A stretch of DNA of 64,000 bases from Ascoidea asiatica JCM 7603 (lineage: Eukaryota; Fungi; Ascomycota): contig BCKQ01000005.1 of the NCBI GenBank assembly GCA_001600695.1, forward strand, positions 655,543 to 719,542, written 5' to 3'. Under the pieces are notes generated by a model. The model was not told the DNA's origin. It did no database searches and saw only the letters and a program-made list of their open reading frames with translations. A program made the position numbers and the translations under genes. Numbering within the stretch: the stretch's first letter is position 1; the number at the start of each line of letters is the position of its first letter. Positions 19,779 through 64,000 of this stretch are shown one piece after another.

Positions 19779-20495
19779 TCAATCAAAAGATGGTGCAAGT
19801 GCTAAAATTGAGAAGTTGAATTTATTAGCATCTCCAGAACTATTCATATAATACAGAATTTTGTCTATAATTTTTTTTTCATTTAAAATATCACCATTTG
19901 GATCTTCAGCTTCTCCAAGATCAATTGGTTGAACTCTTCTACCATCTAATTCATATAAATGATTATCTTTGATACTCTTAGTAAACGTTATAAAATGTAG
20001 ATCCATTTTTGTATCAGCTGAAGGAGCTTCAGTATCTCCATCTTCTGCAATACTTGAATATTCTTTTTCAAGTTCATCAACCATTTGAACTCTTTGATCT
20101 GAAGTTGAAGTTTTTGCCTTCAAAAAGAACTTTTTAATTTCTGAATCTGGCCTTAAATATTTATCATAATTGATATTTCCTAGACAGTGAAGTAAAGCAT
20201 ACAATCCACAAGCATTATTGATGACCTGTTTAAACCACATTATATTCTCTTCATATCCATATTTGTTATATGGCTTCAATTCTTTATCTTGTTCTGTTCT
20301 TTCAATTTCAAAATTATTGGTGATTGGAAACAATAAAATAAGTCCCAAGCAAGGTCTTGGAATAAAAGCAAGAAGTTCTTTTTCTGTTAAAGAATAAACA
20401 TCTTGAAATTCTACTGAACTATTCAATCCGAATCTTCTAGCAAGTTCATTGAATATTCTTGGATTCGACTCCAAAGGAACCACAGCTTTTGGCAT
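19779..20495 (-). CDS. YUH1: Ubiquitin C-terminal hydrolase (peptidase C12)
   Basis: VVPLESNP, KQVINNACGLYALLH (catalytic Cys), LHFITF (His), LYELDGRR (Asp). ATG at 20495. Confidence 0.95.
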   Translation of the reverse strand: MPKAVVPLESNPRIFNELARRFGLNSSVEFQDVYSLTEKELLAFIPRPCLGLILLFPITNNFEIERTEQDKELKPYNKYGYEENIMWFKQVINNACGLYALLHCLGNINYDKYLRPDSEIKKFFLKAKTSTSDQRVQMVDELEKEYSSIAEDGDTEAPSADTKMDLHFITFTKSIKDNHLYELDGRRVQPIDLGEAEDPNGDILNEKKIIDKILYYMNSSGDANKFNFSILALAPSFD

Positions 20496-31968: not shown

Positions 31969-34900
31969 TTATGCAAAACTCAACTCCCATCCAACTTTAC
32001 GCACAACTTCATACCAATCGATATTTTTGGTTCCATTTCCATCCATTTTCCAGATTTGTTCCATGAGCATTTTTACTCTTTTCACATTTTTACATCTGTA
32101 TCTATCAAATAATTCATCAAATCTTTTTATCATTAATTCTCTATCACATTTCAATGAACAATTCATTCCTGCAATAAATAAAGGAAAACAAAGAGATCCC
32201 TCAACTGATGTTCCCAATACAACATCTAATCTTTTTAATAAATCACTTACTAAAAATTGAATTTCAATACATGAAGAATTCATCTTAAGTACACTTTGTT
32301 TTAAATGAATTTTTGAAGTAAACTGAAATACTTCATATAATGTTAATTGTAATTCTAATTCTTCATTATTCAATTCTTTTAAATCGTTATAATATGGCCC
32401 AATTTGATCAATTCTACTTAATATTTCAACTGATTTATTCATAATTTGTTCCAATAATTCATATCTTGATAATTGATGACAATCATCTATATGAGCTTCA
32501 TTAAGATCCCAAGATTCATTACTACTACTCACACTTCCATTATCATTATCATCTTTATGATCATTCAAATTTCTGTTCAAAATTTCACTCTTGTCATTCT
32601 TAGTGTCTTTATGAATACCTTCATCTCCAGTTTTATTATTATTATTGTTATTATTGTTATTATTATTACTTTCATTTCCCCCATCTGAAGCTAAATTTAG
32701 TTCATTTGGTACTCTTTTCATCAATCTTTTACATTTTAATGCCAATTGATTAATTTCTGAAATTATTTGATATAATGGTTGACAGCATCCATGTAATGGA
32801 TCAATAGCTAATTTAATATTTTTAAAAGAAAAATTTTCATTGAAATTCTCATCATTTATTTCATTTATACTTCCAACTTTATTCATACTCATATCAGAAT
32901 TAATATTCAGATTAGAATTCATCATATCGCTCAGATTCATATTATTTTCATTATCATTATAATTATTTAAAACTTTTGAATATTCTTCTTGAAAAAATAA
33001 TCCTCGATCAGTTGAAGTTATATCATGATAATGAAAATTTAATCCAAGCCATTTTTTTTCAATTGAATTACTTCTAATTAATTTTGAAAAACCTCCCTGA
33101 AATTTAATTAATTTAGCTCCGGATTCAAGACAAAGTCTCCATAATTTAACATCTCCATCACAAATTAATGCTCCACATAAAATTAAATAATTTGATAGTC
33201 TAATTAAAAAATTAAACTCATTCATATTATTATCAATTGGATTTTGTTTAATATAATTTAAAGCATTTTTAAGATATAATTGTCCAATTTCTTCATATTT
33301 ACCACCCAAATGAAACCCAGACCAGGCAATTATACTATATAAAACCCCAGGATCAATATGTGCCATTGGTAAAAAAACAGATAAATAATAATTAGTCGAT
33401 TGTGGTGAAATACAAATTAATTTACCTAATTTATCTCTATAATAATCAAATAATTTAACTCCTGTTGGAGATATATTGAATAAATTAGATGGTATTGATT
33501 CATATAATGGAAATTGATTATAATTATTATTAAAATTGATATGAGTAAAGTTAGTAAAATTATTATTGAATTCATTATTAGATCCTTGACTAGGGGATAA
33601 TGGATGGTAGGTATATTCATTCTCTTCACCATTTATATAATTAAAATCTTTATTATTAGATGAGCCAATTAACTGCTGTCCATAATGATAATGATAACTG
33701 TTACTATTGTTATTATTGTTATTGTTAATCGTAGAATATTTTGTATCATGATTCACAATTCTATTCATATTTGGAATTTGATTAATATTATTTTGATTTT
33801 GATGGTTTTGACTTCTATTATTCAAAGTTTGATGATTCTCATTATAATTATGATTATGATTATTGTAATCATTTGGATCTAGTACCGCTTTGATTGCAGT
33901 TAAACTTGACGGTATAATTGAGTTTAAAATTTCCTGATTATTATTATTATTATTACTATTATTACTATTATTACTATTATTACTATTATTACTATTATTA
34001 CTATTATTACTAATATTACTATTATTGTTATTGTTGCTATTATTATTTATATTAGTATTATATGTGATTAAATCAGTTTGAATGGAAGTTGATAATATAT
34101 TTGAAATTATATTAATATTAGAAGGGGAATTTGCATCTTCATTTAAAGGATTGGGATAAACATTATTTTCAATATTATTGATAAGAGGTTGACTATTATT
34201 TTGGCTTTGATTTTGAATTCGATCTTGATTTTGGACTTGATTTTGAACTTGACTTTGAACTTGACTTTGAATTGGGACTTGAACTTGATTTTGATTATAG
34301 TTTTGATTCATATTAGCTTTTTTTATGGTAGAAGAGTTTGAATTAATTGGAGAAGAAATAATAGTTGAAGGAGACGGAGATAAAGATAAGGAAGAAGAAT
34401 TAATTTGATTAATTTGATTATTTTTTTTGTTTAATAGATCAATTTTTTTCTTTAATTTCAATTTCTCTTCATTCAATTCAACTTTTTTTTTAATTTCTCT
34501 AATTTGATGAACAGACATTCCAGGTTTTGCCCAAACACATTTTTTATTTAATCTTTTACAATCTGTACAAATTGGTTTAATTTCATCACATCTTTTTTTT
34601 CTGTATTTACAAGTTATACAACCATATTTTGATCTTTTCGATTTTGATAAATAATTGAAATTTATATCAAGATTTGAGTTGCTATCACTATTATCATTGA
34701 TATCATTAGTAATATTATTATTATTATTATTATTACTGTCATTATTCATAACAATATTATTGGTGGTAATTGTATTATTATTGTTTATGTTATCGTTGTA
34801 ATGTATAAGCTCATTATTAGATTTAATTGAGTTATTGTTAGAAGAAATATTATCACTTTGTTGAAATAAAGATGCATGATGTTGATTTAAAGATAAAGAA

Positions 34901-41902: not shown

Positions 41903-44542
41903 TTATTCCCATTCTGGAAACTCGCTCACTTTTTTAAATGCCATTTCATCTTTTCCAATGATATATAACAGATCCTCATCAAAGCCAATCCATGGACCTT
42001 CTAACTCATCATAAAGTTCAGGATTTTGATATTTTTGAGTTTGATTTCTTGCTTGATCAAAAGTTGCTCGCCTTTGCCCCATAGAATTTCTAACAACGTT
42101 AATCAAGCCAGCTGTTCGCAATGATCGTTCAGAGTCATTATGAATGATTGGATTCTCAAAGGAAGAAGTATTATTAATCGAATCTGATTCATTATTTTCA
42201 TCTTTCCTTATGGCTCTTAATGCAATGAAATATGATAAAGGCAAATAGTTTTTATGAAAGTGATAAAAAAAACCAAGTGTTATAAACGGCAAAGGCACAA
42301 TTAATGAGGCTAATACATATGCATTCAATAAAGCAAAAGTTCCAGCCATTGTCAATTGAAATAATACCAAACCTAAGCATACTCTTTTGAATATCATAGG
42401 CCATACTTTTCCTGTTGAGTTTTGAGGATGAACCATTGAATACATTAGTTGATATTTATAAACATAATACCCTAATATAAAATAAACCACACCTGCAGCC
42501 AAAATTTTGGTTGATAAAACTGAATACATTAAGACAATTATTGACAATAATAATGGTTGTGGTAAAATCAAACCAAAATCAAAAATTGATGGTTTATAAT
42601 AAATTTCTCTATAATCTCTAGGAGTGCGAGAATAAAATAATTTTGTGATTGACAAATAAAAAACATCACCAACTTGCAATAGCTTGAAAGGAAACATTCC
42701 TAATCCTTGAAGTAAAATAAGATCAACATAAAATAATGATAATCTTGAAACTGAATCGGCTAACAAATAAGCAATTTTTGTTGTATCACTTAAAAAAGAC
42801 CAATAATTACTAACAGTTCCAGCTAAAGTAAAAACTAAGAAAAGATTAAAAAAAATATAAAAGAAATTTTTTGCAACACAAGCAAGTTCAGAATCTCCAT
42901 AAGATACATAACTTTGTTTTAGAGATAAATAAGAATAAAAATAAGGTAAAAACACATTTAATAAAGTGAATAAAGTTGGTGGTAATATACCTGTTACAAG
43001 AGTTGTAAGTACTTTAGATTCTGAAATAAATTTTCCAAGACTTGGCCAAAATTCAGTAATCGTTTTTATATTCAACAAAGCAGCAATATAAGAAACGGGA
43101 AATACTAAAGCTACTGAACTTACAGCAATAATAAATGTAATGAAATAGTCTTTTAAGGTCTTTTTATAAGCAGGAACAGCAAATTGATCCCATCTAACAT
43201 CAGCAGGAGAAGGTGCTAGTTTTGCAATTAACTGACCGACATTTGGGTCTAAAACAGCTTGAGCAGCAACTTGAGCAGAAGCAACTGATTCCATAGTTAT
43301 GAAAGCTGATGAAGATGCTTTGAAATCATTATTTTTTCTAATAATTTTTATTTTTTCATCAATTTTTTTTAATTCCCATGTATAATGATTAATTGCATCC
43401 ACTTCTTTTCCAAATATTCCAAGGAAGCCTAATTTTATTTTCGGTCTTTTTGAGGCTTTTTTAATTTTAAAAGGTTGATTACTTAGAGAAGCTGATATTT
43501 CATTGGAATTAATGTTTAATAATAGTCCAGAATCATCCGAATCTTCGAATTCGGAAGAGGTAATAGTATTATTGATATTATTACTGCAATCATTTAAAAT
43601 ATCTCTATTTTGAGGTAGATTTAAAGGAATTACAGAAATTCTTGGATTTTTTGAAATTTTTAAACCTAAATAAGTTGAATAATAAATTTCAAGAATTTTA
43701 ATCAATTCAAATCTTTTTTCAAATAATTTTTTTAAAACTAACCAATTATAACAAATTGAAATATTATTAATTTTTCCAATATTTAAAGATTCAATATACT
43801 TTTTTAAATTTTTAGAATTATTTAAATGTTTTGGTATACCAGAAATTAATAAAGTTTTATCAGTAATTGAAGTTTGAGAACCTAAATAATTTTGTCTAAT
43901 TGTTAAAACTTTTTTAGTTTGATCAAATAAGAAATATAAAACAATAAATGAGAAAATATAAGTGAATAAGAAATAAACCCATAAATAAGGTAAAACAGTT
44001 ATTGGTAATGGTTGAGGATTATTAGTATCATCATCATTATTATTATTATTACTATTAGAAAAAGTTTGAAAATGATTATAAGTATCATTACTAGGAATAT
44101 GATTTGGATTATCAGGATCATCAGGATCATAAAAATCATATTTTCCAGTATAATAATAAGTAATTGGTGTTATTATACAAACTGATAATATTCCTAAAGT
44201 TGAGAAAATTTTAATTAACATTTTAAAAAACCCTAAAAAAACATAAGCATCAAGTCCTGCACAAGATAAAATATCTTCATCTTTAATTCTATATAAAGGT
44301 AAAATCCAACCAAAATAAGATTTTGGCAATGGATTAATATCATCTCTTCTTAAAGTTCTTATAGCATATAAATTCGGCCATTTTGATCTTAAAATTGTAA
44401 AAGTTAAAAAAGTTATAAGACCAAGAAAAAAACTAATTGCTAATTGAGTTTTAAAAACAGTTTGTGGTTGATTTCTTGGGTCCATTGGTGGAATTAAACC
44501 ACCTCCACCTCCATCATCATTATTTATTGATATATGATCCAT
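41903..44542 (-). CDS. CSC1: OSCA/TMEM63 calcium-permeable stress-gated cation channel
   Basis: GLDAYVFLGFFKM, AFITMESVASAQVAAQAVLDP, AP.P.DV.W, KYQLMYSMVHPQNSTGKVWP. ATG at 44542. Confidence 0.9.
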   Translation of the reverse strand: MDHISINNDDGGGGGLIPPMDPRNQPQTVFKTQLAISFFLGLITFLTFTILRSKWPNLYAIRTLRRDDINPLPKSYFGWILPLYRIKDEDILSCAGLDAYVFLGFFKMLIKIFSTLGILSVCIITPITYYYTGKYDFYDPDDPDNPNHIPSNDTYNHFQTFSNSNNNNNDDDTNNPQPLPITVLPYLWVYFLFTYIFSFIVLYFLFDQTKKVLTIRQNYLGSQTSITDKTLLISGIPKHLNNSKNLKKYIESLNIGKINNISICYNWLVLKKLFEKRFELIKILEIYYSTYLGLKISKNPRISVIPLNLPQNRDILNDCSNNINNTITSSEFEDSDDSGLLLNINSNEISASLSNQPFKIKKASKRPKIKLGFLGIFGKEVDAINHYTWELKKIDEKIKIIRKNNDFKASSSAFITMESVASAQVAAQAVLDPNVGQLIAKLAPSPADVRWDQFAVPAYKKTLKDYFITFIIAVSSVALVFPVSYIAALLNIKTITEFWPSLGKFISESKVLTTLVTGILPPTLFTLLNVFLPYFYSYLSLKQSYVSYGDSELACVAKNFFYIFFNLFLVFTLAGTVSNYWSFLSDTTKIAYLLADSVSRLSLFYVDLILLQGLGMFPFKLLQVGDVFYLSITKLFYSRTPRDYREIYYKPSIFDFGLILPQPLLLSIIVLMYSVLSTKILAAGVVYFILGYYVYKYQLMYSMVHPQNSTGKVWPMIFKRVCLGLVLFQLTMAGTFALLNAYVLASLIVPLPFITLGFFYHFHKNYLPLSYFIALRAIRKDENNESDSINNTSSFENPIIHNDSERSLRTAGLINVVRNSMGQRRATFDQARNQTQKYQNPELYDELEGPWIGFDEDLLYIIGKDEMAFKKVSEFPEWE

Positions 44543-49423: not shown

Positions 49424-50747
49424 TTAAGCTAATATATCATTACTGTTATTATTAATATCACTAAGATTATTGAGATTAGCATTATTGATATTATTGATAT
49501 TATTAATATTATTGATATTATAATTATTAATATGATTTGATTCCAATTCTAAATTACCAACTTTATGAATAATAGTTGCATCATTTCCAAAATTATTAAC
49601 TTGATGTAAAGATTGTCTGGCTCTAAGATTATTCTCATTTAAATTATCAGAATCACTCATTGAATTGAGATTACTATTATTTGTATTGAAACTAATATCA
49701 CCTAAACTAGCAAACCTGTTACCATTAATACTTTTTGTATTATAACCATTAATATTTTTACTATTGTTTTTCATGATATTAATGCTATTAATATTATTGA
49801 CATTATTATTATTATTATTATTATTACTACTAGTAGTAATGCTAGTACTAGAATTAACGTTATTACTATTTACACTATTTGAAATATTTTGAATCGCATT
49901 ATTAATTGAATTGTTGTTAGAATAAGTAGATAAATTTCCAGAAACATTTCCTGAAGTGGTTGAATTGATACTTGAGATACTATTACTCATTGAATTATTA
50001 GGAATATGAGCATTATTATTACCATTATTTGAGTTTGAAGTTAAAGATAAACCTGAAATTTGGGTTGAAATTTTCATAAATTCATCATTACTTAAACTTA
50101 AATTATAATTCCCATATTGAGGAGAATTGTTTATATTACCGTTGATGTTATTACTATTATTATTATTATTATTATTATTGGTTATAGAAGAAATATTGTG
50201 CTGATTCAATTGACTATGGGAATAATGATGAGTTAATTGATGCTGAACAACTGGAGCAGTTGGAGGAGGAGGTAAAATACCTGCATTTCTGGGAAAACCA
50301 CATCTTAAACAATAAACATTTTTTGCAAAATTATGATATGAACAATTTTCATTGCCACATTTCCAGTCTCCTGCTCTAAAGGGAACGGAATTCATCCTAT
50401 TTGATAGCATATTACCATTATTTGTTACTGTATTATTATTGTTATTACTTGTATTATTACTGGTACTATTATTAGTATTTGTTGAAGAAATATTTGAATT
50501 CAAATTATTGTTTGACGTATTGCTTGTATTATTGATGATTGAGTTATTGATACTACTAATTGAATTATTGTTAATAGAGTTTGAATTCCCATTACCATTA
50601 GAGTTAATGTTATTTATATTGTTATAAAAACCATTATTATAATTCATATTCAAATTAGCATTTGCATTAATATTTGAAGTTGAATTATTTGAATATGCAT
50701 AAGTATTAGCGTTATTACTATTACTGTTATTATTAGTTGAAATGTTA

Positions 50748-50781
<34 letters not shown>

Positions 50782-52195
50782 TGTTATTGAAATTATTGGA
50801 ATTATTATAGATAGAATCTTGTTGAGCACCAAGAGCTGGAAAAGAACAACGAAAACAAGCTGTACGCCTTTGAAAATTGGAAAATCCACAAGATGGACAA
50901 GTCCAGTCACCAGGCCTTGGCCTATTCTTATTTTGAGGGAATGGGGTTAAAATTTCTTGAGCTTTATCTAATAATCTTGTAGTTGAAGGCTGTACTTCAA
51001 TTGATCTATCATTCAAGGTTTTACCATTCATTGCTAAAGATTCACTTGCTTCTTCATGAGTTGAAAAAACAGCAAAAGCAATACCTAGGTTTTTATGAGG
51101 ATCAGGTGTTTTCAAAGTCCAAAATGCAGTTGGCTTTGTTGAACCAAATCTTGTGAACCAAGAATCTAATTCTGATTGAGTGATATCAAAGGGTAAATTT
51201 GTTAAAAATAAAACATTTGATCTTTCGCTTAAAAAGGCTCTAATATCAGCATCACCATCATAAGGATTAGTTAGTACATCTGAATGTTCATCATTTGGAT
51301 AAGACTTTTTAATTAAAGCTTTTAAAATTCGGGCTATAAGAAAAGCTTCATCTAAAGCTCTTCTAGGTAAAAACAAAGGATTACTGTTTATGTTAACATT
51401 AGTGGTAATATTAGTGGTAGGTGCATTAGTATTAGATGTAATAGATGTGGAAGGAGTAGTAGAAGGTATAATAGAACCGATTGCACTAGCAGGTTGTTTA
51501 CTAGAAATAGAAGTTGTTGTAGATACTTCATTAACACTGGATGAAGTATCATTGTCTTTGGTAACATTGGAAGTAGTAGTATTACTATTACTAGTATTTG
51601 AATCATTATTTTCAATTACAGAATTTGAGGAAAGAACTGAAGGTGGTGTTGGAAATAAATTTGGATTATTATTTTGAGTTATAATATCGACTTCAAGTGC
51701 AGCAAAAATAGCATTGATATTATTTGAGGAATAAGATATAGATTCAGGATGATGAGCTTGCCATTTTGAGTATTCAGATTTAATATCAAATATTTTTGGG
51801 TATTGTAAAAATAAAGGTAATAATACATTTTTATCTCTTGCTTCTCTTGAAATTTGAACTTTTAAATCATAAGAATTTAAAGTTATAAATATGAAAGATT
51901 TTTTTAAATTAATTAAATTGGTCTTTAAGAAATTTTCAAAATTTAATATTGACTCTCTAAAATTGTTTGCATTTTTAACATGATCCCAAGTTAAACCTGT
52001 TAGATTTGTACAAAGATTTGTTATTGGATTAGAAGTTGGTTTTATGAGGATGGAGTCATATGAGATTTCATTAAGAGTTGCAGAATCAACTAATACCCAG
52101 GCTAGCTCGATAGTCTCAGCCAGATCTTTATTTGTAGAAAGAGAATGTTCATCACAGGTAGTTGAAACATGGAGAATAACATAGACATCAGGCAT
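49424..52195 (-). CDS. NRP1: Asn-rich RNA-binding protein (exonuclease-like fold + RRM + 2 RanBP2 zinc fingers)
   Basis: HVSTTCDE; RRM LFLTNLP.D.TQSELDSWF; RPRPGDWTCPSCGFSNFQRRTACFRC; PFRAGDWKC..CSYHNFAKN..CLRC. Confidence 0.93.
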
Positions 52196-52866
52196 TCTAA
52201 AGGAGAGATTGAGAAGGCTTTCATTACCTAGTTGAGCAGTGAAAAAAATGAATGAAAAAAGAAAAGAAAATATAACAGAGATTGGAGATTGGAGATCAGA
52301 TATCAGATATCAGATAATAGTTATATTGTAATTAATAATTATACTTATAAATAAATAAGTTAAATGAAACAATTTTCAATATAAAAATGAATATGAAGAT
52401 GAATATAATGAATATGGGTGAATAACTTGGATTAAACAAGATCTTAAATAAAAACTAAAATATTTTTCAAGTGGAAACTGCAATAAACGTTAACTAACCT
52501 TTCTGTCGAGGGCTCTTGTTATTGAACATCTCTAGCGCCAGCAGCGAAGATTCCCAGAGCCGCGCGAGTTCACAAGTGTTCTCGTCCAGCACCGCCACTT
52601 ACAAAGACAGCCTCAGATTCGGGGTCTACTCAATGTCTCAATTAACCATCTACAGAATCATATGAAATCCGAGGGTTTCCTTATTTGGGTTGGAACTTTT
52701 TATGCGTAATTAAACAATTTAACTTTATTAATCTATTCACACTTTCTAAACAGAAAATTAATATAATAACAATAAAAAATAATAACAAAAAAAGTACAAA
52801 ACAAAAAATACAAAAATTATACAAAAATTATACAGAAATAATACAAAAGTAATACAAAAAATCACT

Positions 52867-55800
52867 TCAAATATTAGCTAATTGACTGAAGTATTGACGA
52901 AGAATTATAGAAAGCATTTCAGGTAGTTCATTAATATCATGAACAACAACGTAAAACTCAAAGGGAAAGGTATCAAGATATTTATCAATTTGTAGTTTCA
53001 TTATCCCAGTTTCTTCATCGGTAATATACCTTACTTGGCTCATATCTAAAATACTTTCTTTATTTTCTCTACTATTTTTTTCATGATTCATATTATCTCC
53101 ATTTAAACAATCAATAATTACAAACACAATCATGATTTTATCTTCTCTAGCTTTACGCACCATTCTTTCTATACTTTCATGGTCTTCACAAACTCCATCT
53201 GATAAAATTATTTCTAATTGCCAAAGTTCTTGGCTTTGAGTTCTTCTAGCATTGGTAAATAATTTATTTGAGATATTAATTAATTTCTTTATATCTGTTT
53301 TTTCTTCTTTAAAATTGAACCATTTCAAAAGATTTGCTCCTTTTTCAACTGACGATGAAAAACTTTCACTAAATTTATGTAAAACTTTTATGGTTTCACC
53401 AAATTTGACTATACAGATTTCTCCGGTTTCTAGTTGTGTTAATGATTTATAAAATAAACATAAACTATCAAATGCGAATTTAATTGCTTTACTTTCTCCC
53501 ATAGATTTAGAATCATCAATTGCTATCATAATTTGATATTGCCTCTTACTAGGTTTATTTCTCTTTAACCAAATTTTATCTTTTCGAAATTCACTTGCAA
53601 TATATGGTATAATTTTTTTCATATTTAGTCTTTTACCAGTTCTATAATCTCCTTTTAGTTTGGTAGCCAACGTTGGTTCTAAAATCAATCTAAGTTGTTC
53701 ACTTAATCTTGATGATAATTCTTGTGTTTCTCTTTCACTATCTTTCCAAAGTTGACGAGCAATTTCAATATTCATACCTCCATTCCTCATAGGTTCATCA
53801 TTATTATTAAGGAAAATTTTTTGAAATTCTTCTTCCATGTATTCTTCATCTTTATATTTATCTTCATCTTTATCTTCATCGACAATATCATCAACATTTT
53901 TATTCTTATCTTTCTTAAAACCAATATTAATTAACTCTTCATTTTCTAATGTGCCATCTTCATTTTTTCTAATATCTTCATCTTTCTGTTGTTCTTCATC
54001 TTTCAAGTCACTAGTTGCTTTACCATTGAAATTACCCTCTTCATTATTCAATTCTTCTTCTTTTTTATCTTCTTTGTCATCTTCATTTTCAACTTCAATC
54101 ATTTCTCCATCTAACCCATTTTTTTCTTCTGATTCGTCAATAATTTTTTCTTCATCGATAGTTTGAATTTGCTCTTCTTTTGCAGCTCCTAATGCCTGAG
54201 TTTCGTTTTCAGAATTTTTACCATCTAAGTGTTCAAATTCATCTGGCCTGGTATTCGCTTTTTCTTTTTCTTTTTTATCTTCATCTTCTATATTAGAAGC
54301 TTCTTTAATCTCTTCATGGCGACGATAAAATTCTTTTAATGAATCTCCTAATTCTTTCAACGTTTGATTAACCATTTCTCTTGCACTATCATTATTATTA
54401 TAATTTTCTTCTTCTTCTTTATTATCATTTTTCTTTTCATCATTATTTTCTCCAATTGTTCCATTAGATCCAATATTTTCTTCTTCATTTTTAACTTCAG
54501 AATCAGCACCTTCTCCTTTTTCTCCGGAATTTTGTTTATTTTCAGCCTGATTTTCCTCTTTATTTTCATCGATATTATTGTTCATTTCTTCAATTCCATC
54601 TAATCCTTCAACCCCATCTAAATTTTCCTCTTTAGAGTCCTTAGAATCAGGATCTTCATCATTTGAATCTTCTTCAATATTTTCTTGTAATTCAACATCA
54701 CCGTTTTGATTATTGGTTTCTGTTTCTTCAGGCTCATTTAGTTCATCAACATCATTGTCATTGTCATTGTCATCATCTTTCATCTCTTCATCAATTCCAT
54801 CCTCAAAATCAGCGGCAGATTCTTCTTGATTTTCATTTTCTTTCTCATTAGAATCGCCATCCACCTCCTCTAAATTTTCTTCTTTTTCATTTTCATTTAG
54901 GTTTAAGTTTTCATTTTCTAGATCAATATCTAAATTGTCTTCGAATCCCTGGTCTTCATTGTTATCTTCTTTTTCTTCTTCTTCTTTATCTGATGTTTCA
55001 TCATCAAGATTTATATCTTCTGGTAAATCTAAGATTTCTGAATCGGGTACGTTTTCATCAAGTCTATTATCATCTTCCTTATTTTGAACCGCATCTTCTT
55101 GCTCTCCAAGATTTTCTTTGGATTCTTCATCTTTATTTTCAGAATCCCCTTCTTTGTCGTTATCTGAGTTTTGATTATTTTCATCTTCTTTGGCTTCTAA
55201 ATTACTTTCTCCATCTTTATTTTGTGGCATGTCTTTTGAGTCTTTTTCTTTCATATCATTTTCTTCTTCTAATTCTTCTTTGTCATTCCACATTTTCTCA
55301 TCAATAGCATTAGGGTCAGCATCATCTATATCATCGATTTTTTCGTCAGCATCTTCCTTATCATTATTTTCATTATCAGAGTCGGTATTATCTTCGCCTG
55401 GAGCGTTCTCCATTTCACCGTCTATATCGCCATCAATATCTTGCGCATTATTCTTATCATCTTCGTTATCTTCATTATCATTATTCTGATTTTCATCATT
55501 TGCAGCAAGTGCATCTTCATCGAGATCTTCTTCATCTAAATCTTTGGAACTATTCATAGCTCCAGAAGTATCCCCATTTCCTAATCCACTTCCTTCTTCA
55601 ACTTCATCTGATTCCTTTTCATCATGTTCTTCATTATCCGGTATACAAAAACCGTTTACTGAAAGATCTAAAAGTGCAGAGCATAAAATATACGTAGCTT
55701 TAGAAGAACAATAATAATATTTACAGTAACTGTTTTTCACAAGAATAACCGTTTCCTTATACTGTGTAGCCAAAGGTTGAAATAAGAGTAAAATAGATGA

Positions 55801-58800
55801 AACAAAGTCAGAATTGCTTTCATTATAATTAAACTTTGAGACTTGATAATAGAAATTTTTTATCAAAGCTGAAATTTTTCTATGTTTTAGCAAATTTGAA
55901 ATCTCAGCCAACCTGTTTTCAACAGTTGGAATCCAATTTTCTTCTTCTTCTTTTATTTCTGAAGAAAGTCGAAGTTGGGTGATATTTTGGGACGAAAGGA
56001 TAATTGAAGTAGAAACCGAGATGAATTTTTCTAAAATATCAGAAACAGTAGAACTATTGAATGAAATTTCTTGTTTTCTAGTTCTCTGCAAGTTGGACTG
56101 AATCCAGTTTAGTATTGTATCTGCTAAAAAGGAGAAACTGCTTTCTTCTGACTTCCATTTAGTAAGGTCAGTTATAAAAGTTTGTAAATTTAAATTCATG
56201 GTCTCAAGCTCTAATTGTTTTGCTGTTGTATAAACAATAGCACCATTAGAAGGTTCTAACTGTTTTGATATTGACTTTACTTTAAATTTATAATTGATTA
56301 ATATATCTGAAAGAGCATTCTTTCCTTTAATTGGTGTGACTTTAGAAACACAATTCATAGATTCTAGACAAAAATCAATAAGTTGAACAAGGCAACGATT
56401 GCATTCGTCTAACCACTTTTCATCTAGAATAATAGATTTACAGTTGATAAGCTTTTCACCCTTATTTAGTGATGATGTTAAATTTTCAAATAGATCGATA
56501 GTAGAGTGCAATTCTGTTACGGATTTAAGCAATTGACAAATTGGTTCTCTGTCCTTTATCAAAAAGAATATAAGATTTTCAGATATAGCAACACATCTCT
56601 TTATTTCGTTTTTTGGTAAATTCTCTTCGCAATTTGAAGTGGCATTTTTCAATTTTGGAAGTAAGTCTAAAATTCTAAAGAAATAGGTATCAATCTTACC
56701 GTCCTCTGTGTCAGGGAAAGATTTAGCAGTACTGATGATTAATGTAGATGATTTTTGAACTTCATGAATGTCACCTCTCAAATTAGTTTTCAAACCACTA
56801 CGCTTTAATTCTTTCACTGTTTCATTCAAAAATCGCATTTTTCTAGACTTTAATAGTCCTTTGTTTTGCTTGTTCGTAGAAAAACTCTCTTTTCTTAACT
56901 CATCTATCCCTTCAATTATTTCAGTGGCAAATGAAAGTAAATCTGGATATGTTTCCTGACTTAGACTTTCATTGTAAAAAAGCAATTTGTTATTTAAATT
57001 TTTGATATTTCCAAAAACTTTGGGCTTTGAATTCCACAAAGAAATTTCAGAAAGCTTATCATAACAATTTTGATATTGGGAAATACCTATAAAGTTATTT
57101 TGCAAATTCTTAGATGGATCACACCCATAGTGTGCAACCTTGAGACTTTTTGGCAATCCTTTTTCGATAACACTAATTATTTTCCCCGAAATCATTTCTC
57201 TGTATTTTCTAACAATTTTATAAAGACTTCTATGAGATTTATGCGCACTTTGCTTAAGAGCATGAATGTTTACATCTTTCCAACTTGCAAGTAAAATGAT
57301 TTCTGTCATCTCCTTCTCCAACTTTTTCCTTCCATCACAAATATGCTGAGTGATATTCTCAGAAAATTGTTGAAAAAAAGATATAGTATTAGAAACAGCG
57401 TTATAATAAGACTTGTTTATATTAAGTAAAATCATACTATTTTTGAAAGCCTTCAAAAGTCTTAAGCGTCCCTCAAACTGCCCATAAGAAGAATCAGCAA
57501 GAAATTCAGAAAGAGCAGTGACCAAATCAGGAATATTCTTAGAGGTACTTTCTGTTTCGGAAACCAAAAGAACCTCGAATAAATGAACCCACCATTTTTG
57601 TAACTCTGTAGTTTGAAGTTTATCCTCGTGATGAAATAAAGATTTCCATGATTTCAATTCTAATTTTCTCCAAGAAACAATAATGTTAGTGATTTGTTCA
57701 GTGAAATTATTTAAAGAAATTTTTTGATGGGCGTATTTTTCCCACTCGGTTAAATAAGTATAAATCTGTTCAACCTTCATTATAAGCTTAACAAGTGGAG
57801 TTCTAGAAGCAAAACCTAGATATTCATTACAAGCTCTAAAAAGAATTTGTAAAGTTGCATGTTCTGGCCATTCATTCAACAAATCATTAACTTTTCCTTG
57901 AATATTCTCTATAACCTTAACAGACTCCTTTAGTTCTTTAGGGGCACTACCATAATAGAAATCAACTTCACTTTCATCTTCAACAGTTTCATAAGCAGAA
58001 GTTACTGAACTAATTCTATTCAATAATAATATCAACGCGCTCGGTGTAGCTGAATTCAAAGATTTTTGTCTATCATGGTCAAAATTACTCAAAAAAACAT
58101 TCAAAGATAAAGCAGGACCATCTCTTAAAAATATTCTGATAAAACTAGTAACAATTTCGTTAGATGTAGAATTATCCTTTAATTTTAATTTCGGTGAAGC
58201 TTCTTGAATTTCACTTTCTTCATAATCAGGAAACAAAAGAGCAATTTCATCTTCCTCATTTTCCAACGATGCAGAGTATTTATAAAGTCCCTGGGGTTCA
58301 TTGGTCTCCTTGAGAATTTTAATCTTCCATTCTCTATAAACAAGTTCAAAAACTAGGAAAATATCATCAACAGCAACATTTGACAACCCATTAGTAACAT
58401 TCAATTCAATCAGTTTAATGATATCAAGTAAATTGTCTTCAGGATTCTGCATTAGGGAGAGATTCTCTTGATTTAATAATTGCATTTTTCCAAAATTATC
58501 GATTGGGTTAGAGTGCTTATCTGTTTCAGCAGTTGAGTTAAAATCAGCTACTAAAGAAAAGCCAAGCTTCAATCCATAAATATAGCCCTTCAAAATATCA
58601 TTTACATCATCATAGAGAAAGTGCTTATTTGATAAACGATCTAGGAATCGAGAGGAGTTTTGCTGGAATATTTCAACCTTTCTTTTAGATGTTTCTGTTT
58701 TTTCTAAAGCTACTGTAAGTAAAGATTGTACAGGTTTCTCATCGAGGCAAGCTGACATAAAAGACTTCCATTCTTCAAAAACTTCTCTCATGGAAGTATT

Positions 58801-61800
58801 GGATCTAAAGACTTGAGGCTTATCTGGAACTGCAAAATCCGACTCCTTTGGTAAATAATTTTCTATGCTTAATTCTGTTTCATCGCCGTTTATTATCTTT
58901 CTAACTGATTTCCAATGCTCTTTCATTTCTTCGCAAAATGATCTCTGAAGCATATAAAGATCATGTTTAACATAATCTTCAATAGCAGGATCATAGGGAG
59001 AGCTAGGGACAAATAACTGGATCATTCCACATGAAAAGAATATCCATGCTTTTCCAAGCTCTTCGATTTTCATATTTTCATTTAAAAGTAATGTGATAGA
59101 AGGGCAGAGAAACACCGCACAAATTCTAGAAAAGTTTTTGTTGGTTGATGATACAGAGAAATTTATAAGTTGAATAAAGTCAACTGATTGCGATTTTAAT
59201 GTTTCAAGTAAACAGTTATTGACTTCCTTTGGAAAAGTATCTCTGTGAGCGTAATATATCAAAGAAATCCACTTTAAAAGGATACTTTGAAAAGCTTTCA
59301 CTGGACTACCTAGAATCGTATTTGAATCCCTAATAAGCATTGCCGATAATGATTTTAAATCCTTTAAGGACTCCAAAAGTGAATTTCCAGATACATCTGC
59401 AATGGCGTTAGCATGAACCAAAATATTGCCGTATAGAGAACAACTAAAAATATCCCTTACAATTGAAGACATAGGGTTACTCCATATAGGATTTAAAACT
59501 GTAGGATAAGCCAATGATTGCGCTTCTGAAAAATAGGGCAATAAAGAGTTTGTGTTTCTTCCCGCAATCATTTCTGAAATTAAAAGTTCCTCTTCATTTT
59601 GAAGTCTTTGAGAAAAATTATTGCTATTTAACTCAATCAAAATTAACAACAAATTATAATCCTTTTGAAATAAAGAAGAGCGCTCATTTAAAAACTTTGA
59701 AGAAAGTTTGTTAATAGAGTTAATTTGAATGTCAATTTGTGTAACAGCAGCTTCATACTCAGAAAATTCTATTTCTCCAAGGCAAATTTGATCTTGTATA
59801 TGTAAAACACTCTTTTGAAGTATAATGGCTGACGAGAGTTGATTAAATAGTAAATTTGAACAAGTAGAATCAAATTTTGTACATAGAGACCTGAAACTAG
59901 TAAAAAGCTCCCAATGTTTAATACTAGAAGGGTAGCTTCTTTTGAAAGCTTTCCATAATAGGGCCATAGAAGTCCCAGAAACAAGAGTTAATTTTTTGCT
60001 AAATCGATTAATTTGATTTTGTAAATTTTGAGTATCGTTGCCAAATATCGGTTTATGATCATCAACCCAAGTACGTATCAAATTTGAAAATATCCTTATT
60101 TTTTCCTCATCCTCACATTTAATTATTAAGCAAAATATGGTGTAGAGCACAAATAGGGACTTGGATTTTTGATTAGGCCCAAATCCAGTTTCCATGGAAT
60201 CAAAAATAGACTTCGAAATAAATTCAGACAAAGAAAGCGCAAAATCATAAAGAGGTAGTGAACGCGCAAACTTGAGCTTTCTTCCCAAAGAAAAAGCAGC
60301 AGATTTCTCAATAAACGATAAAGTATTTGGATTTAAAACTAAAGAATTTTCTTTTGTTTTTGACAAAAATTTCAAAGAATTAAAAAACCTCAAGCAAAGT
60401 TCAAAAAATATTACAATTTCAGCCCTAACATAAGATTCTCTCAACGGGTTTGCAAAGTCGAAAGCATTTATATTTGAAAGGGGATTCATAGCCTGATATT
60501 GAGTGAATGAAACTTCTGAATTGCATATCATATTTGCTTCTTCTCCTACCAAACGATATATATCCAAAGATCTCGATAATACTCTATTTTTTGTTAAATA
60601 ATCTATGTCCATATTCATAGCTTTGATAGCATCTAAATTAAACCGTTCAAATTCAGAACTCAGATCAACTAATGACGACAAGCCTTCCAAAAGAGGAAAT
60701 AGAGCAAAAGGCAAAACGGTTACCAAGGTGTGCATAAAACTTTGGGTGTTTAGATTCTTGATAAATTTTATTGAATCAAAAACAAGGCCAAAAAAATAAT
60801 TCATAGAACCATTGCAAAACATAAAAGACAAAATTGGTCTATATTCAGTATCGTTAAATTTAAGATGTTCCAATTTCTGAATTAAATTTAACGGCATTTT
60901 TTGATTGCTTGAAATGTTCAAGCAGCTTTGATCAAATGAAGATCCACGATCTTTAAGGTTTTCCATATAAATTTCAACTCCTCGATTTCGCATAGCTCTA
61001 GATAGTTCTCCAAATCTAGGATTTATTGTCAAGAACAATCTGAAATTAGGATGTGGTTTAATTATACGAGGGTGGCCATCTGCCAAGCTGCACTCGTTGA
61101 TTATTAATGAACCATTAGTTTCTAAAAGAGAATTGAGTCTATCAAGTACCGACAGACTACAAAGGTTTGCATTATCTAAAACAAGCCAATCTCCATTTTT
61201 CACAGCTTCTACTAATAAACCGTCAAACCACTCAAAATTAACTGTTTTAAGCTGTGTTAAGTTATTCAAAAGAGAAGAACCTTCCGAATGAATATCTATT
61301 AAAATTTTTTCACTTGAAGTTTTTGCAAGAGTTTTCAAATTGTCAAGAAGATATGCAAACTTTGTTAAATCAGAAGTGCATGAATCGATTTGAGCTAAAA
61401 TTGAAAGACCCAGCATATGATCAGAATAATCATCTGTGGATAAACTCCTTGCAAGATATAAATACAAGCAATATTGAAGTTTTTGAGAAAAAATGGTCAT
61501 TTTTTTAACAGGATCAACCTGCTCATAGCCACCAAGAATATCCATACTATCAACATCACTGTTCATAGAAAATTCAACTAGATTTGCTCCGATACTATTT
61601 GCCAAATATCTTATGACTTCAGTTTTTCCTGAACTGGAAGGACCTGTTAAAATCAAAGGCCACTTTTTATTGATAGCCATTATCATTGACTCTAAAATTT
61701 GCCTATTACAATTCATATAAATGTTCCTATTTCCAGACTTGTATTGTAAAGTATTAAATCTTCTCATCAAAGCATTTCCCGATTGGACAAACTTTTCACC

Positions 61801-64000
61801 GAGGATGAAATGAGAATCTGACATATCAAAGTTTCCAAAAAAATCTTGAAAAACTTTATAAGCTCTTTTTCTATCTTTTTTGTCACGGAATCGTTGACTA
61901 ATGATCATTTTTAGAAAGTTTTCAGGCCTTTCACTAGGTGATAAAGTTTTACAATTCAACATTTCAAACCATCTTAAAGAATCTCGAAGATTAAACTCCC
62001 ATGGACTTCCAGAGTTGCCCCATAACTTTTTTACAACCACTTCCTCTTCAATTTTGCCCATAAATTGAATAAGCTTGGAATATAAATCTTCATTCATATC
62101 AGGAAATAAATGTTTTGAAATTAAAAAAAGATCTTCCATTGTTAATACATCAATATAAACAACTGTGAAACGATTGATGAAAGACTTGGGAAGACCTTTC
62201 CTTCCCCCACCTTGATATTGAGGATTTTGTGCAGCAAACACAACAAAACTAGGGTTGCAACTAAAAGTTTTGTTTAGCTCTGGAATGTAAACTTCTGATC
62301 TATGATCCAAACAAGCATTTAGCCCCTCGAGAACTGATTGCGAAGCAAGATTCATTTCATCCAATAAAATCCATTCTCCCATTTTCATAGCGCGTAAAAA
62401 AGGTGCATCTTTCCAAGTAAATTCCCCTGTTTTACCACCTTCGGTTGGAGAATCAGACCCAAATAAATCAATCAAATCAGTTTGTTCTGAAAGATTTATT
62501 CTGGTTAATTTATTGCCTGTTGCTTTTGCTATAACTGAAACTAAACTAGTTTTACCTACACCTGGACTTCCTTCTAATAGAATTGGCTTTCTAACCTGCA
62601 TTGCTCTAAGCGTTCGGAAAACATTTTTAGCTGTTGTAGGAGCGTTCAAATTGAATGAGTTGATTTCAACCGTATTATGTCTAGGTATCGAAAAAGGACC
62701 ACATGACAATGTAGTTTCAGATAAAACTGTTTTATAATTATTATCATAGATAGATGTTAGCTCCAATTCTGAAATTTTTGCTAATCTATCCAAGCAGATT
62801 TTTTTCTCTCTTAAAAGTGATTCTTTGGATTCTGCTAAATAAGCAGTATTATTTGTTCCTAAAGAATCAATAAAAACCATACAAGCACCGTCAACTATTG
62901 CTTGATTAACACCGATGCTCTTGAAAGAAACATTAATAAATTCGCACCAAGCTAAAATATCACGGATTGAAATGACCCCACTGTTTGCATATCCTCCTCC
63001 AAATCTTTTTCCAAACCATTCGGAAAATGCAGATATGACTATAGCAAGATAAGACAATTTTGAGTTTAGCTTCCCTTTTATGATCATTTTCACGTCTTCA
63101 AAATTATCCATAGATGGAACCCAGATTTCGGTAAATCTGTTTCTAAGTGCAAGAGATAATTCCTTTTTACCATAATCTCCACCTGGATTCATTGTTGCAA
63201 AAAATTGAAATCCAGATTTGACCACAATGTTGTTTCCAACAGAACCCTTTTCTGCCAAAAGTAATGTTCTCTCAGTTTCCAAAACACTATTAAGTCTTTC
63301 TAAAACCGAATCGTCAGCCAAGGAAATCTCATCTAATAAGAAAAAATTTCCTTGGAGAAGAGCTTTCACTAGAGGGCCATCCGACCATTCGAATAGAGTA
63401 TTCATTGATTCTCTAAGCTTCTTAATATCAAATAGAGTATTTTTGAGAATTGTCGACTTGTCTTTGATATTATCAAATATTTGAAGGAGTTCTGACAAAT
63501 TTTCAGAGCCAGAGAGTACTATGAAATTCTTTGTAAGAACTTCTTTAAGGAGACCTACAAGTTTAACTTGAATTTCACTTTTATTTCTCATTGGTCGCTG
63601 AGCCCCTAATATATCACTGGTTTCAGTATTCTGATGTGCATTCACAGATATTAATTCTTTCTTGTAAAGTTTCGATAGTAGTTGACATATTGTAGTTTTT
63701 CCACACCCTGTTTCACCTACCAATAAAACTGGCTCGTTATTTTTTAAGGCTGTTGAAACAAGAACAAGCAAACGTCTCATTCCATGTGTCCATATCACTG
63801 AGTTTTCAACTTTTATTATATCAGAGGGAAATAAACTTTCATATAGTACTTCCATATTTAATTTTACCCTCATTACTTTTTCAATAACTGTTCGCACTAC
63901 TTCTTTTTCCTCGGTACGCCTTACCCTTTCGGCTAGTAGCATATATCCATTTGATGCTAATTCTTCGTATCCAACAGCTTCTCGTCCAGCCCAACGAAAT
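52867..64000 (-). CDS. MDN1: Midasin/Rea1 AAA+ ATPase; 5' part lies beyond the window
   Basis: Walker A motifs GETGCGKT, GSPGVGKT and GPSSSGKT; long linker; D/E-rich region; MIDAS/vWA (IDDSKSM, ILSDG). The frame stays open to 64000 (FRWAGREAVGYEELASNGYM). Confidence 0.98.
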   Translation of the reverse strand, partial: FRWAGREAVGYEELASNGYMLLAERVRRTEEKEVVRTVIEKVMRVKLNMEVLYESLFPSDIIKVENSVIWTHGMRRLLVLVSTALKNNEPVLLVGETGCGKTTICQLLSKLYKKELISVNAHQNTETSDILGAQRPMRNKSEIQVKLVGLLKEVLTKNFIVLSGSENLSELLQIFDNIKDKSTILKNTLFDIKKLRESMNTLFEWSDGPLVKALLQGNFFLLDEISLADDSVLERLNSVLETERTLLLAEKGSVGNNIVVKSGFQFFATMNPGGDYGKKELSLALRNRFTEIWVPSMDNFEDVKMIIKGKLNSKLSYLAIVISAFSEWFGKRFGGGYANSGVISIRDILAWCEFINVSFKSIGVNQAIVDGACMVFIDSLGTNNTAYLAESKESLLREKKICLDRLAKISELELTSIYDNNYKTVLSETTLSCGPFSIPRHNTVEINSFNLNAPTTAKNVFRTLRAMQVRKPILLEGSPGVGKTSLVSVIAKATGNKLTRINLSEQTDLIDLFGSDSPTEGGKTGEFTWKDAPFLRAMKMGEWILLDEMNLASQSVLEGLNACLDHRSEVYIPELNKTFSCNPSFVVFAAQNPQYQGGGRKGLPKSFINRFTVVYIDVLTMEDLFLISKHLFPDMNEDLYSKLIQFMGKIEEEVVVKKLWGNSGSPWEFNLRDSLRWFEMLNCKTLSPSERPENFLKMIISQRFRDKKDRKRAYKVFQDFFGNFDMSDSHFILGEKFVQSGNALMRRFNTLQYKSGNRNIYMNCNRQILESMIMAINKKWPLILTGPSSSGKTEVIRYLANSIGANLVEFSMNSDVDSMDILGGYEQVDPVKKMTIFSQKLQYCLYLYLARSLSTDDYSDHMLGLSILAQIDSCTSDLTKFAYLLDNLKTLAKTSSEKILIDIHSEGSSLLNNLTQLKTVNFEWFDGLLVEAVKNGDWLVLDNANLCSLSVLDRLNSLLETNGSLIINECSLADGHPRIIKPHPNFRLFLTINPRFGELSRAMRNRGVEIYMENLKDRGSSFDQSCLNISSNQKMPLNLIQKLEHLKFNDTEYRPILSFMFCNGSMNYFFGLVFDSIKFIKNLNTQSFMHTLVTVLPFALFPLLEGLSSLVDLSSEFERFNLDAIKAMNMDIDYLTKNRVLSRSLDIYRLVGEEANMICNSEVSFTQYQAMNPLSNINAFDFANPLRESYVRAEIVIFFELCLRFFNSLKFLSKTKENSLVLNPNTLSFIEKSAAFSLGRKLKFARSLPLYDFALSLSEFISKSIFDSMETGFGPNQKSKSLFVLYTIFCLIIKCEDEEKIRIFSNLIRTWVDDHKPIFGNDTQNLQNQINRFSKKLTLVSGTSMALLWKAFKRSYPSSIKHWELFTSFRSLCTKFDSTCSNLLFNQLSSAIILQKSVLHIQDQICLGEIEFSEYEAAVTQIDIQINSINKLSSKFLNERSSLFQKDYNLLLILIELNSNNFSQRLQNEEELLISEMIAGRNTNSLLPYFSEAQSLAYPTVLNPIWSNPMSSIVRDIFSCSLYGNILVHANAIADVSGNSLLESLKDLKSLSAMLIRDSNTILGSPVKAFQSILLKWISLIYYAHRDTFPKEVNNCLLETLKSQSVDFIQLINFSVSSTNKNFSRICAVFLCPSITLLLNENMKIEELGKAWIFFSCGMIQLFVPSSPYDPAIEDYVKHDLYMLQRSFCEEMKEHWKSVRKIINGDETELSIENYLPKESDFAVPDKPQVFRSNTSMREVFEEWKSFMSACLDEKPVQSLLTVALEKTETSKRKVEIFQQNSSRFLDRLSNKHFLYDDVNDILKGYIYGLKLGFSLVADFNSTAETDKHSNPIDNFGKMQLLNQENLSLMQNPEDNLLDIIKLIELNVTNGLSNVAVDDIFLVFELVYREWKIKILKETNEPQGLYKYSASLENEEDEIALLFPDYEESEIQEASPKLKLKDNSTSNEIVTSFIRIFLRDGPALSLNVFLSNFDHDRQKSLNSATPSALILLLNRISSVTSAYETVEDESEVDFYYGSAPKELKESVKVIENIQGKVNDLLNEWPEHATLQILFRACNEYLGFASRTPLVKLIMKVEQIYTYLTEWEKYAHQKISLNNFTEQITNIIVSWRKLELKSWKSLFHHEDKLQTTELQKWWVHLFEVLLVSETESTSKNIPDLVTALSEFLADSSYGQFEGRLRLLKAFKNSMILLNINKSYYNAVSNTISFFQQFSENITQHICDGRKKLEKEMTEIILLASWKDVNIHALKQSAHKSHRSLYKIVRKYREMISGKIISVIEKGLPKSLKVAHYGCDPSKNLQNNFIGISQYQNCYDKLSEISLWNSKPKVFGNIKNLNNKLLFYNESLSQETYPDLLSFATEIIEGIDELRKESFSTNKQNKGLLKSRKMRFLNETVKELKRSGLKTNLRGDIHEVQKSSTLIISTAKSFPDTEDGKIDTYFFRILDLLPKLKNATSNCEENLPKNEIKRCVAISENLIFFLIKDREPICQLLKSVTELHSTIDLFENLTSSLNKGEKLINCKSIILDEKWLDECNRCLVQLIDFCLESMNCVSKVTPIKGKNALSDILINYKFKVKSISKQLEPSNGAIVYTTAKQLELETMNLNLQTFITDLTKWKSEESSFSFLADTILNWIQSNLQRTRKQEISFNSSTVSDILEKFISVSTSIILSSQNITQLRLSSEIKEEEENWIPTVENRLAEISNLLKHRKISALIKNFYYQVSKFNYNESNSDFVSSILLLFQPLATQYKETVILVKNSYCKYYYCSSKATYILCSALLDLSVNGFCIPDNEEHDEKESDEVEEGSGLGNGDTSGAMNSSKDLDEEDLDEDALAANDENQNNDNEDNEDDKNNAQDIDGDIDGEMENAPGEDNTDSDNENNDKEDADEKIDDIDDADPNAIDEKMWNDKEELEEENDMKEKDSKDMPQNKDGESNLEAKEDENNQNSDNDKEGDSENKDEESKENLGEQEDAVQNKEDDNRLDENVPDSEILDLPEDINLDDETSDKEEEEKEDNNEDQGFEDNLDIDLENENLNLNENEKEENLEEVDGDSNEKENENQEESAADFEDGIDEEMKDDDNDNDNDVDELNEPEETETNNQNGDVELQENIEEDSNDEDPDSKDSKEENLDGVEGLDGIEEMNNNIDENKEENQAENKQNSGEKGEGADSEVKNEEENIGSNGTIGENNDEKKNDNKEEEENYNNNDSAREMVNQTLKELGDSLKEFYRRHEEIKEASNIEDEDKKEKEKANTRPDEFEHLDGKNSENETQALGAAKEEQIQTIDEEKIIDESEEKNGLDGEMIEVENEDDKEDKKEEELNNEEGNFNGKATSDLKDEEQQKDEDIRKNEDGTLENEELINIGFKKDKNKNVDDIVDEDKDEDKYKDEEYMEEEFQKIFLNNNDEPMRNGGMNIEIARQLWKDSERETQELSSRLSEQLRLILEPTLATKLKGDYRTGKRLNMKKIIPYIASEFRKDKIWLKRNKPSKRQYQIMIAIDDSKSMGESKAIKFAFDSLCLFYKSLTQLETGEICIVKFGETIKVLHKFSESFSSSVEKGANLLKWFNFKEEKTDIKKLINISNKLFTNARRTQSQELWQLEIILSDGVCEDHESIERMVRKAREDKIMIVFVIIDCLNGDNMNHEKNSRENKESILDMSQVRYITDEETGIMKLQIDKYLDTFPFEFYVVVHDINELPEMLSIILRQYFSQLANI

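Follow-up and report, generated by a model that had tools for sequence, protein, structure and literature searches.

The reassignment of CUG in the CUG-Ser2 clade of budding yeasts (Ascoidea and Saccharomycopsis), and the dual decoding of this codon as serine and leucine in Ascoidea asiatica, are already known: both go back to publications of 2018, with further work in 2021 and 2024. A. asiatica carries tS(CAG) in two copies and tL(CAG) in one, while A. rubescens is devoid of tL(CAG) (PMC6041473). Mass spectrometry of A. asiatica, with 929 spectra over 110 CUG positions, yielded 53.9% leucine and 45.0% serine, both found at the same positions; CUG amounts to ~1.2% of the serine box, and in the 26 proteins analysed there it did not occur at conserved serine or leucine positions and was shared only at background level (PMC6041473). 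The tS(CAG) of the clade arose from tS(GCU) (PMC5951914). [quoted passage not shown]

In this work we followed up a CTG codon that a sequence-only reading had singled out in a window of 64,000 nt (the whole stretch of DNA analysed), and compared its genome with these systems. Nothing that we tested differs in kind from what has been described in A. asiatica (PMC6041473). As in that species, two tRNA-Ser(CAG) genes one base apart coexist with one canonical tRNA-Leu(CAG); the serine tRNA is of the GCU family, with A37 and G73, and the leucine tRNA combines G37 and A73 with an extended variable arm; CUG accounts for ~1.1-1.2% of the serine or leucine box, and the columns in which it falls are inconsistent for one amino acid. 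The Ser2 yeasts that read CUG as serine only (A. rubescens and Saccharomycopsis; PMC5951914, PMC11342251) have in common with this genome a tRNA-Ser(CAG) from tS(GCU) and introns in their tRNA(CAG) genes, and Saccharomycopsis also has KRE9 near a tS(CAG) copy. However, A. rubescens lacks the tL(CAG) gene that is present here, and the tL(CAG) genes of Saccharomycopsis have enlarged D-loops and have lost conserved bases, whereas none of the checkable defects is seen in ours.

The CUG-Ser1 yeasts (Candida, Debaryomyces; table 12) also use a serine tRNA with anticodon CAG and a purine at position 33, which is G33 in Candida and A33 here. Their reassignment has an independent origin: the Ser1 tRNA comes from the UCN-reading serine tRNAs, while the one studied here is closest to tS(GCU). 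Also, tL(CAG) is gone from the Ser1 species, and many of their CUGs stand at conserved serine positions, unlike what we observe.

Two kinds of tRNA(CAG) gene

We scanned the genome (20.3 Mb) with sequence patterns, with confirmation by Rfam model RF00005, and obtained three tRNA(CAG) genes, two of serine type and one of leucine type, all of them intron-bearing and followed on their 3' side by runs of T6-T7. The scans, which revealed no other tRNA-like CAG gene, required an AAGG motif in the D-arm and a GTTCRA T-loop, so that an aberrant fourth gene could escape them. There is no tRNA gene in the window itself. On account of their introns, the three tRNA(CAG) genes escape standard tRNA finders, something that annotation of such genomes has to take into account. 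Indeed, ARAGORN in its default mode, which does not handle introns, gave no CAG anticodon in the window and 46 tRNA loci, and an Rfam tRNA search did not find this anticodon among the best 63 of ~1728 genome candidates. Our early patterns failed too, since introns push the T-loop past the permitted gap; the tRNA-like sequences that they matched are genes for Ser(UGA) and Ser(GCU) with 'TCAGG' in their introns. Three sites of the form 'AAGGC N8 CAG' (C2:40081, C1:2686100 and C1:2243340) are not tRNAs.

The two copies of tRNA-Ser(CAG) lie on the plus strand of contig C4 (G000:C4 ~1039950-1040080; L080:1481-1611; Rfam 37.1 bits) and on the minus strand of contig C11 (G000:C11 ~18890-19025; L085:1486-1617; Rfam 40.1 bits). 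Both have a serine body with a long variable arm, G73, A37 and an anticodon loop that reads C-A-CAG-A, with introns of 49 and 50 nt, and once spliced they are 99% alike, differing by one base. With introns removed, as in all our tRNA comparisons, their identity is 83-84% to Ser(GCU), but falls to 68-72% with Ser(UGA/AGA) and 63-68% with leucine tRNAs; these genes probably derive from the AGY-reading tS(GCU) family, and not from the UCN-reading serine tRNAs. Parsed canonically, both genes align with tRNA-Ser(GCU) at every base, down to a compensatory C28:G42 pair, and the 5' exon ends of the two copies are conserved while their introns have diverged.

For these serine-bodied genes, ARAGORN run in intron mode suggests a different parse, with anticodons TGA and TGT, and this is one argument in favour of a standard code in which the serine-type tRNA(CAG) would be inactive or mis-parsed. 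We rejected it because its intron would sit at 32/33 instead of the eukaryotic 37/38, and because it gives different anticodons to genes that are 99% identical, one of them a threonine anticodon on a serine body. The canonical parse, by contrast, gives CAG and A37 in both genes, in a register anchored to tRNA-Ser(GCU) by the C28:G42 pair.

Some minor features of these genes deserve mention. Both copies have A33 in the anticodon loop (C-A-CAG-A-A), while tRNA-Ser(GCU) has C-T-GCT-A-A; tRNAs almost always have U33, and the text of the literature that we searched makes no mention of this A33. The introns of the two copies are unrelated except for a common ATCTTG just before the 3' exon, and that of the C11 copy contains two N bases (L085:1540-1575), an assembly ambiguity. 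KRE9 is found ~1.5 kb upstream of the C4 copy; the 6 kb on the downstream side of this copy yielded no MTQ2.

The single tRNA-Leu(CAG) gene lies on the same contig as the window, 176 kb upstream of it (G000:C5 ~479225-479367; Rfam 41.4 bits), and ARAGORN in intron mode does call it Leu(cag). Its anticodon loop reads TT-CAG-G, with a 62-nt intron at the canonical position, and it has a long variable arm, A35, G37, A73 and an 8-nt D-loop with a G13:A22 mismatch and no insertions. It is 85% identical to tRNA-Leu(AAG), for which we found three genes (G000:C6:551800, C12:100698 and C20:84925), and shares with it exactly the same variable arm and T-arm. Its D-loop is one C shorter than that of tRNA-Leu(AAG), GGTTAAGG versus GGTCTAAGG, and resembles the D-loop of serine tRNAs. 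A scan with the leucine pattern did not find tRNA-Leu(UAG), a gene whose D-arm may differ or which may be interrupted by an intron.

One genome thus encodes tRNAs of two kinds that have their anticodon in common but opposite identity elements, and every gene has intact A and B boxes, a canonical intron and a terminator. The sequence-only reading had suggested the dual Ser/Leu tRNA(CAG) situation of the clade, and it is borne out by the finding of a well-formed tRNA-Leu(CAG) beside two tRNA-Ser(CAG) genes; genome-wide typing showed both types, and not tRNA-Leu(CAG) alone.

CTG codons of the window

CTG is a very rare codon in the window, which has 25.5% G+C: it accounts for 18 of the 14,773 codons (0.12%) of the 19 ORFs of at least 150 aa, that is, for 1.2% of the leucine box, or 1.1% (18/1615) if it is grouped with the serine codons. 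We aligned every CTG located in alignable sequence, namely one in Nrp1, four in MDN1, two in NTO1 and one in YUH1.

The codon that motivated this study is located at 52121-52123, where CAG on the plus strand gives a minus-strand CTG flanked as K-D-[CTG]-A-E. It is codon 25 of an ORF of 923 aa (49424..52195, minus strand) that, by its domain matches, is Nrp1-like: an N-terminal RNase_T-like exonuclease fold is followed by an RRM, RanBP2 zinc fingers and a long low-complexity tail. A 1613-base contig from sequencing run X1 spans positions 50791-52368 with zero mismatches, but this run is possibly the assembly's own source, and the match is not independent; a second sequencing sample covers the region only patchily. 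In an alignment of the N-termini of the best 120 of 479 homologues retrieved by word search, the column is serine in 119 and threonine in one, and its neighbours are nearly invariant as well (K118, D120, A118, E120), so the claim that this CTG occupies a conserved serine position holds. At this codon a small residue such as serine would suit better than leucine, a preference that, coming from a single site, proves little.

The Nrp1 codon is weaker evidence for a serine reading than it appears at first. In the window, five of the six near-invariant residues just N-terminal of the CTG are altered (HGVYVT to HSLSTN), and the syntenic orthologue of A. rubescens has alanine (GCT) in the serine column, adjoining a 44-residue insertion rich in Asn and Leu. 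From these changes, the serine column is apparently not under its usual constraint in Ascoidea. More generally, there are signs that the exonuclease-like domain at the N-terminus of Nrp1 is decaying in this genus (A. rubescens L093:18362-21472 compared with window 49424-52195): the A. rubescens protein has TTFDD for TTCDE, the 44-residue insertion after the DE motif and no PITALCT...TWEHV block, while the protein of the window keeps this block and has its GVYV segment changed.

The four MDN1 codons fall in columns of very different kinds. MDN1 (midasin) occupies 52867..64000 on the minus strand, with a frame that is open to the end of the window (63943-64000) and a start outside it; by comparison with A. 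rubescens, ~960 N-terminal residues lie beyond. Codon 930 (61153-61155, minus strand), in the AAA motif NANLCS[CTG]SVLDRLN, was said to be in a column of proline, alanine or serine, and it is indeed proline in 113 homologues and alanine in six, with no serine. Codon 1844 (58411-58413, minus strand) sits in a column that is ~77% leucine, with isoleucine or valine in the remainder and isoleucine in A. rubescens; this contradicts the impression that conserved leucine positions avoid CTG. The columns of the other two codons are variable: that of codon 1094 (60661-60663, minus strand) has a serine plurality of about 28-34%, and that of codon 844 (61411-61413, minus strand) a plurality of leucine and isoleucine in a local alignment, and Ala, Gln, Ile or Leu in a global one.

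The other alignable codons say less. YUH1 codon 218 (19854-19856, minus strand) is aligned to alanine in S. cerevisiae Yuh1 and to lysine in human UCH-L3, a non-leucine position as had been stated, though an uninformative one. In the NTO1-like gene, codon 877 (23405-23407, minus strand) is in a column with 65 Lys and 43 Arg across fungi and with Ile, Leu or Phe in budding-yeast relatives, and codon 845 (23501-23503, minus strand) belongs to a lineage-specific insertion, where 99 of the 120 homologues have a gap.

The remaining 10 of the 18 CTGs lie outside alignable domains, mostly in Asn/Gln-rich or other low-complexity sequence. The low-complexity codons previously pointed out in the RTG3-like bHLH gene and in the UME6-like Zn-cluster gene are present where expected. 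The first, codon 537 (12811-12813, plus strand), belongs to an AAT-TTA-AAT-CTG-AAT-TTA run and is Leu-like by periodicity only; the second is codon 458 (38773-38775, plus strand; QQA[CTG]LQ). The RTG3-like gene has another CTG outside its HLH domain (codon 462, 12586-12588, plus strand) and the UME6-like gene four more (39193-39195, 39298-39300, 39874-39876 and 41002-41004, plus strand), all five of the latter gene being outside the Zn-cluster domain and most of them in low-complexity sequence. Two CTGs (codons 791 and 799; 32908..32934, minus strand) are in an Asn-rich part of a Zn-cluster factor, within a Fungal_trans_2 match, and the last one is codon 863 of an RSN1/PHM7-like gene (41969-41971, minus strand), in a C-terminal tail outside Pfam domains.

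As a control, we took the ordinary leucine and serine codons of the window genes from the same three alignments as the CTGs. Among 198 non-CTG leucine codons, none falls in a column with at least 0.9 Ser, none in one with at least 0.9 Pro, and 61 fall in columns with at least 0.7 Leu. For 180 serine codons the corresponding counts are 19, three and one. Judged against these columns, Nrp1 codon 25 and MDN1 codon 930 behave like serine codons, and MDN1 codon 1844 like a leucine codon, a set of three that neither pure code accounts for. Altogether, the CTG columns of the window do not align mostly to conserved leucine; they are mixed, with one Ser-like, one Pro and one or two Leu-like, and with so few sites the codon is not assignable from the window alone. 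Such a mixture is the outcome that a dually read codon would give. Codetta likewise meets mixed columns in the Ascoidea/Saccharomycopsis clade and returns '?' for CUG (PMC8629427).

A CTG shared with A. rubescens

The best midasin match is that of A. rubescens (E 5e-248 versus 1e-213 for the next one), with 37% identity in the divergent region. NRP1 adjoins MDN1 in the window and also in A. rubescens, where the NRP1 orthologue is downstream of MDN1; the locus has 31% G+C in that species, and its proteins are far from identical to those of the window, differences that, with its reported lack of tRNA-Leu(CAG), exclude A. rubescens as the source of the window. At the column of window MDN1 codon 930, A. 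rubescens midasin has CTG too, as its codon 1889. Given that CTG amounts to 5 of its 4,646 codons, the number of shared CTGs expected by chance for the four MDN1 codons of the window is ~0.004. This differs from the 26 proteins of the A. asiatica study (PMC6041473), with their lack of CUGs at conserved serine or leucine positions and sharing at background level only: here we find CTGs at a column that is serine in 119 of 120 homologues and at one that is ~77% leucine, and one of the CTGs is shared with A. rubescens.

What we add to the published picture is limited to these cases, and we do not generalise from them: CTGs at conserved columns (Nrp1 Ser 119/120, midasin Leu ~77%) and one CTG position common to two Ascoidea species, in an AAA motif of midasin that otherwise does not vary. 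It is tempting to read them as CUGs that have been kept at strongly conserved columns, with one more kept in both Ascoidea species since their split in place of an otherwise invariant proline, and to propose that ambiguous codons can persist, and even be selected, at important sites. We consider this unlikely. Still, should the pattern extend to the whole genome, the view that ambiguous codons are cleared from important positions would need some qualification.

Reading of the CUG codon

By its nearest relative, its synteny and the type of its tRNA-Ser(CAG), the genome is assigned to the CUG-Ser2 (Ascoidea/Saccharomycopsis) clade. We hold it to be very probable that this is a CUG-Ser2 (Ascoideales) budding yeast, in all likelihood A. 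asiatica or a species very close to it, in which nuclear CUG is served by two competing tRNAs and read as serine or leucine. In this scenario, the two tRNA-Ser(CAG) genes derived from tS(GCU) would be charged with serine through the determinants of their long variable arm and G73, and A37 would work against leucyl-tRNA synthetase; the single tRNA-Leu(CAG), with A35, G37, A73 and a normal D-loop, would be charged with leucine. Each CUG would then be read as one or the other by competing tRNAs, and the codon would be kept very rare and mostly where either residue is tolerated. Nrp1 codon 25 would be one such ambiguous codon, found by chance in a serine column that is near-universal among fungi, in a part of the domain that may be under relaxed constraint in the Ascoidea lineage. 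By analogy with the A. asiatica literature (PMC6041473), we suggest that both tRNAs are charged here and take part in translation, in a proportion of about 50:50. The claim that CUG is decoded as serine was sound as to the clade and the two serine-type tRNA(CAG) genes, but too simple, since the proteomics of A. asiatica show serine and leucine in nearly equal amounts (PMC6041473). In practice, a plain leucine translation of CTG is to be avoided in such a genome, and table 12 does not describe it quite correctly.

A first alternative is that CUG is read essentially only as serine, as in A. rubescens and Saccharomycopsis, and that tRNA-Leu(CAG) is a retained relic without use in translation. Several observations are in line with it: serine-type tRNA(CAG) genes outnumber the leucine type two to one, a CTG occupies the invariant serine column of Nrp1, and the CTG of the invariant proline column is common to A. 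rubescens, which reads CUG as serine (PMC6041473), while the tL(CAG) that most Ascoideales keep unused (PMC11342251) provides a precedent for such a relic. However, our tRNA-Leu(CAG), with its 8-nt D-loop, long variable arm and A35/G37/A73, is free of the defects known from Saccharomycopsis, and its T-arm and variable arm are those of tRNA-Leu(AAG). Besides, a CTG is found in a column with ~77% leucine, of the kind (Leu at least 0.7) where only one in 180 serine codons falls, and the tRNA set matches that of A. asiatica, for which ~54% leucine was measured. We regard this alternative as improbable. As for the standard code, in which CUG would be leucine and the CTG of Nrp1 would simply reflect replacement of serine by leucine as its domain decays, it could draw on the Leu-like look of some CTGs, on the several invariant residues missing from the exonuclease-like region and on the alanine of the sister species, but it is barely credible when two CTGs stand at Ser or Pro columns (at least 0.9) where none of 198 ordinary leucine codons does, when the TGA/TGT parse fails as shown above and when CUG reassignment is proven for the clade of the nearest named relative.

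Other features of the genome

The searches for tRNA genes brought up some further observations. Default ARAGORN labels intron-bearing Lys(UUU) genes as 'Leu(tag)': the 94-nt genes called 'tRNA-Leu(tag)' (among them L010:906-999, L012:1297-1390 and L015:1905-1998) have the loop CTTTTAG and look like intron-bearing tRNA-Lys(UUU). As a consequence of this mislabelling, automatic tRNA tables of this genome would be wrong for several isoacceptors. Dense tRNA clusters are found in G000:C4 1.33-1.46 Mb, C15 110-170 kb, C19 180-265 kb and C23 55-166 kb (L003-L019), with up to five genes per 3 kb and a recurring order Phe(GAA)/Glu(UUC)/Lys-like/Leu(UAA), which suggests duplicated tRNA arrays. Chance pattern matches were obtained in strikingly G+C-rich stretches (G000:C1:2049738-2049798, C17:60216-60290, C17:155186-155246 and C19:168687-168750), which point to compositional islands in a genome that otherwise has ~25% G+C in the window.
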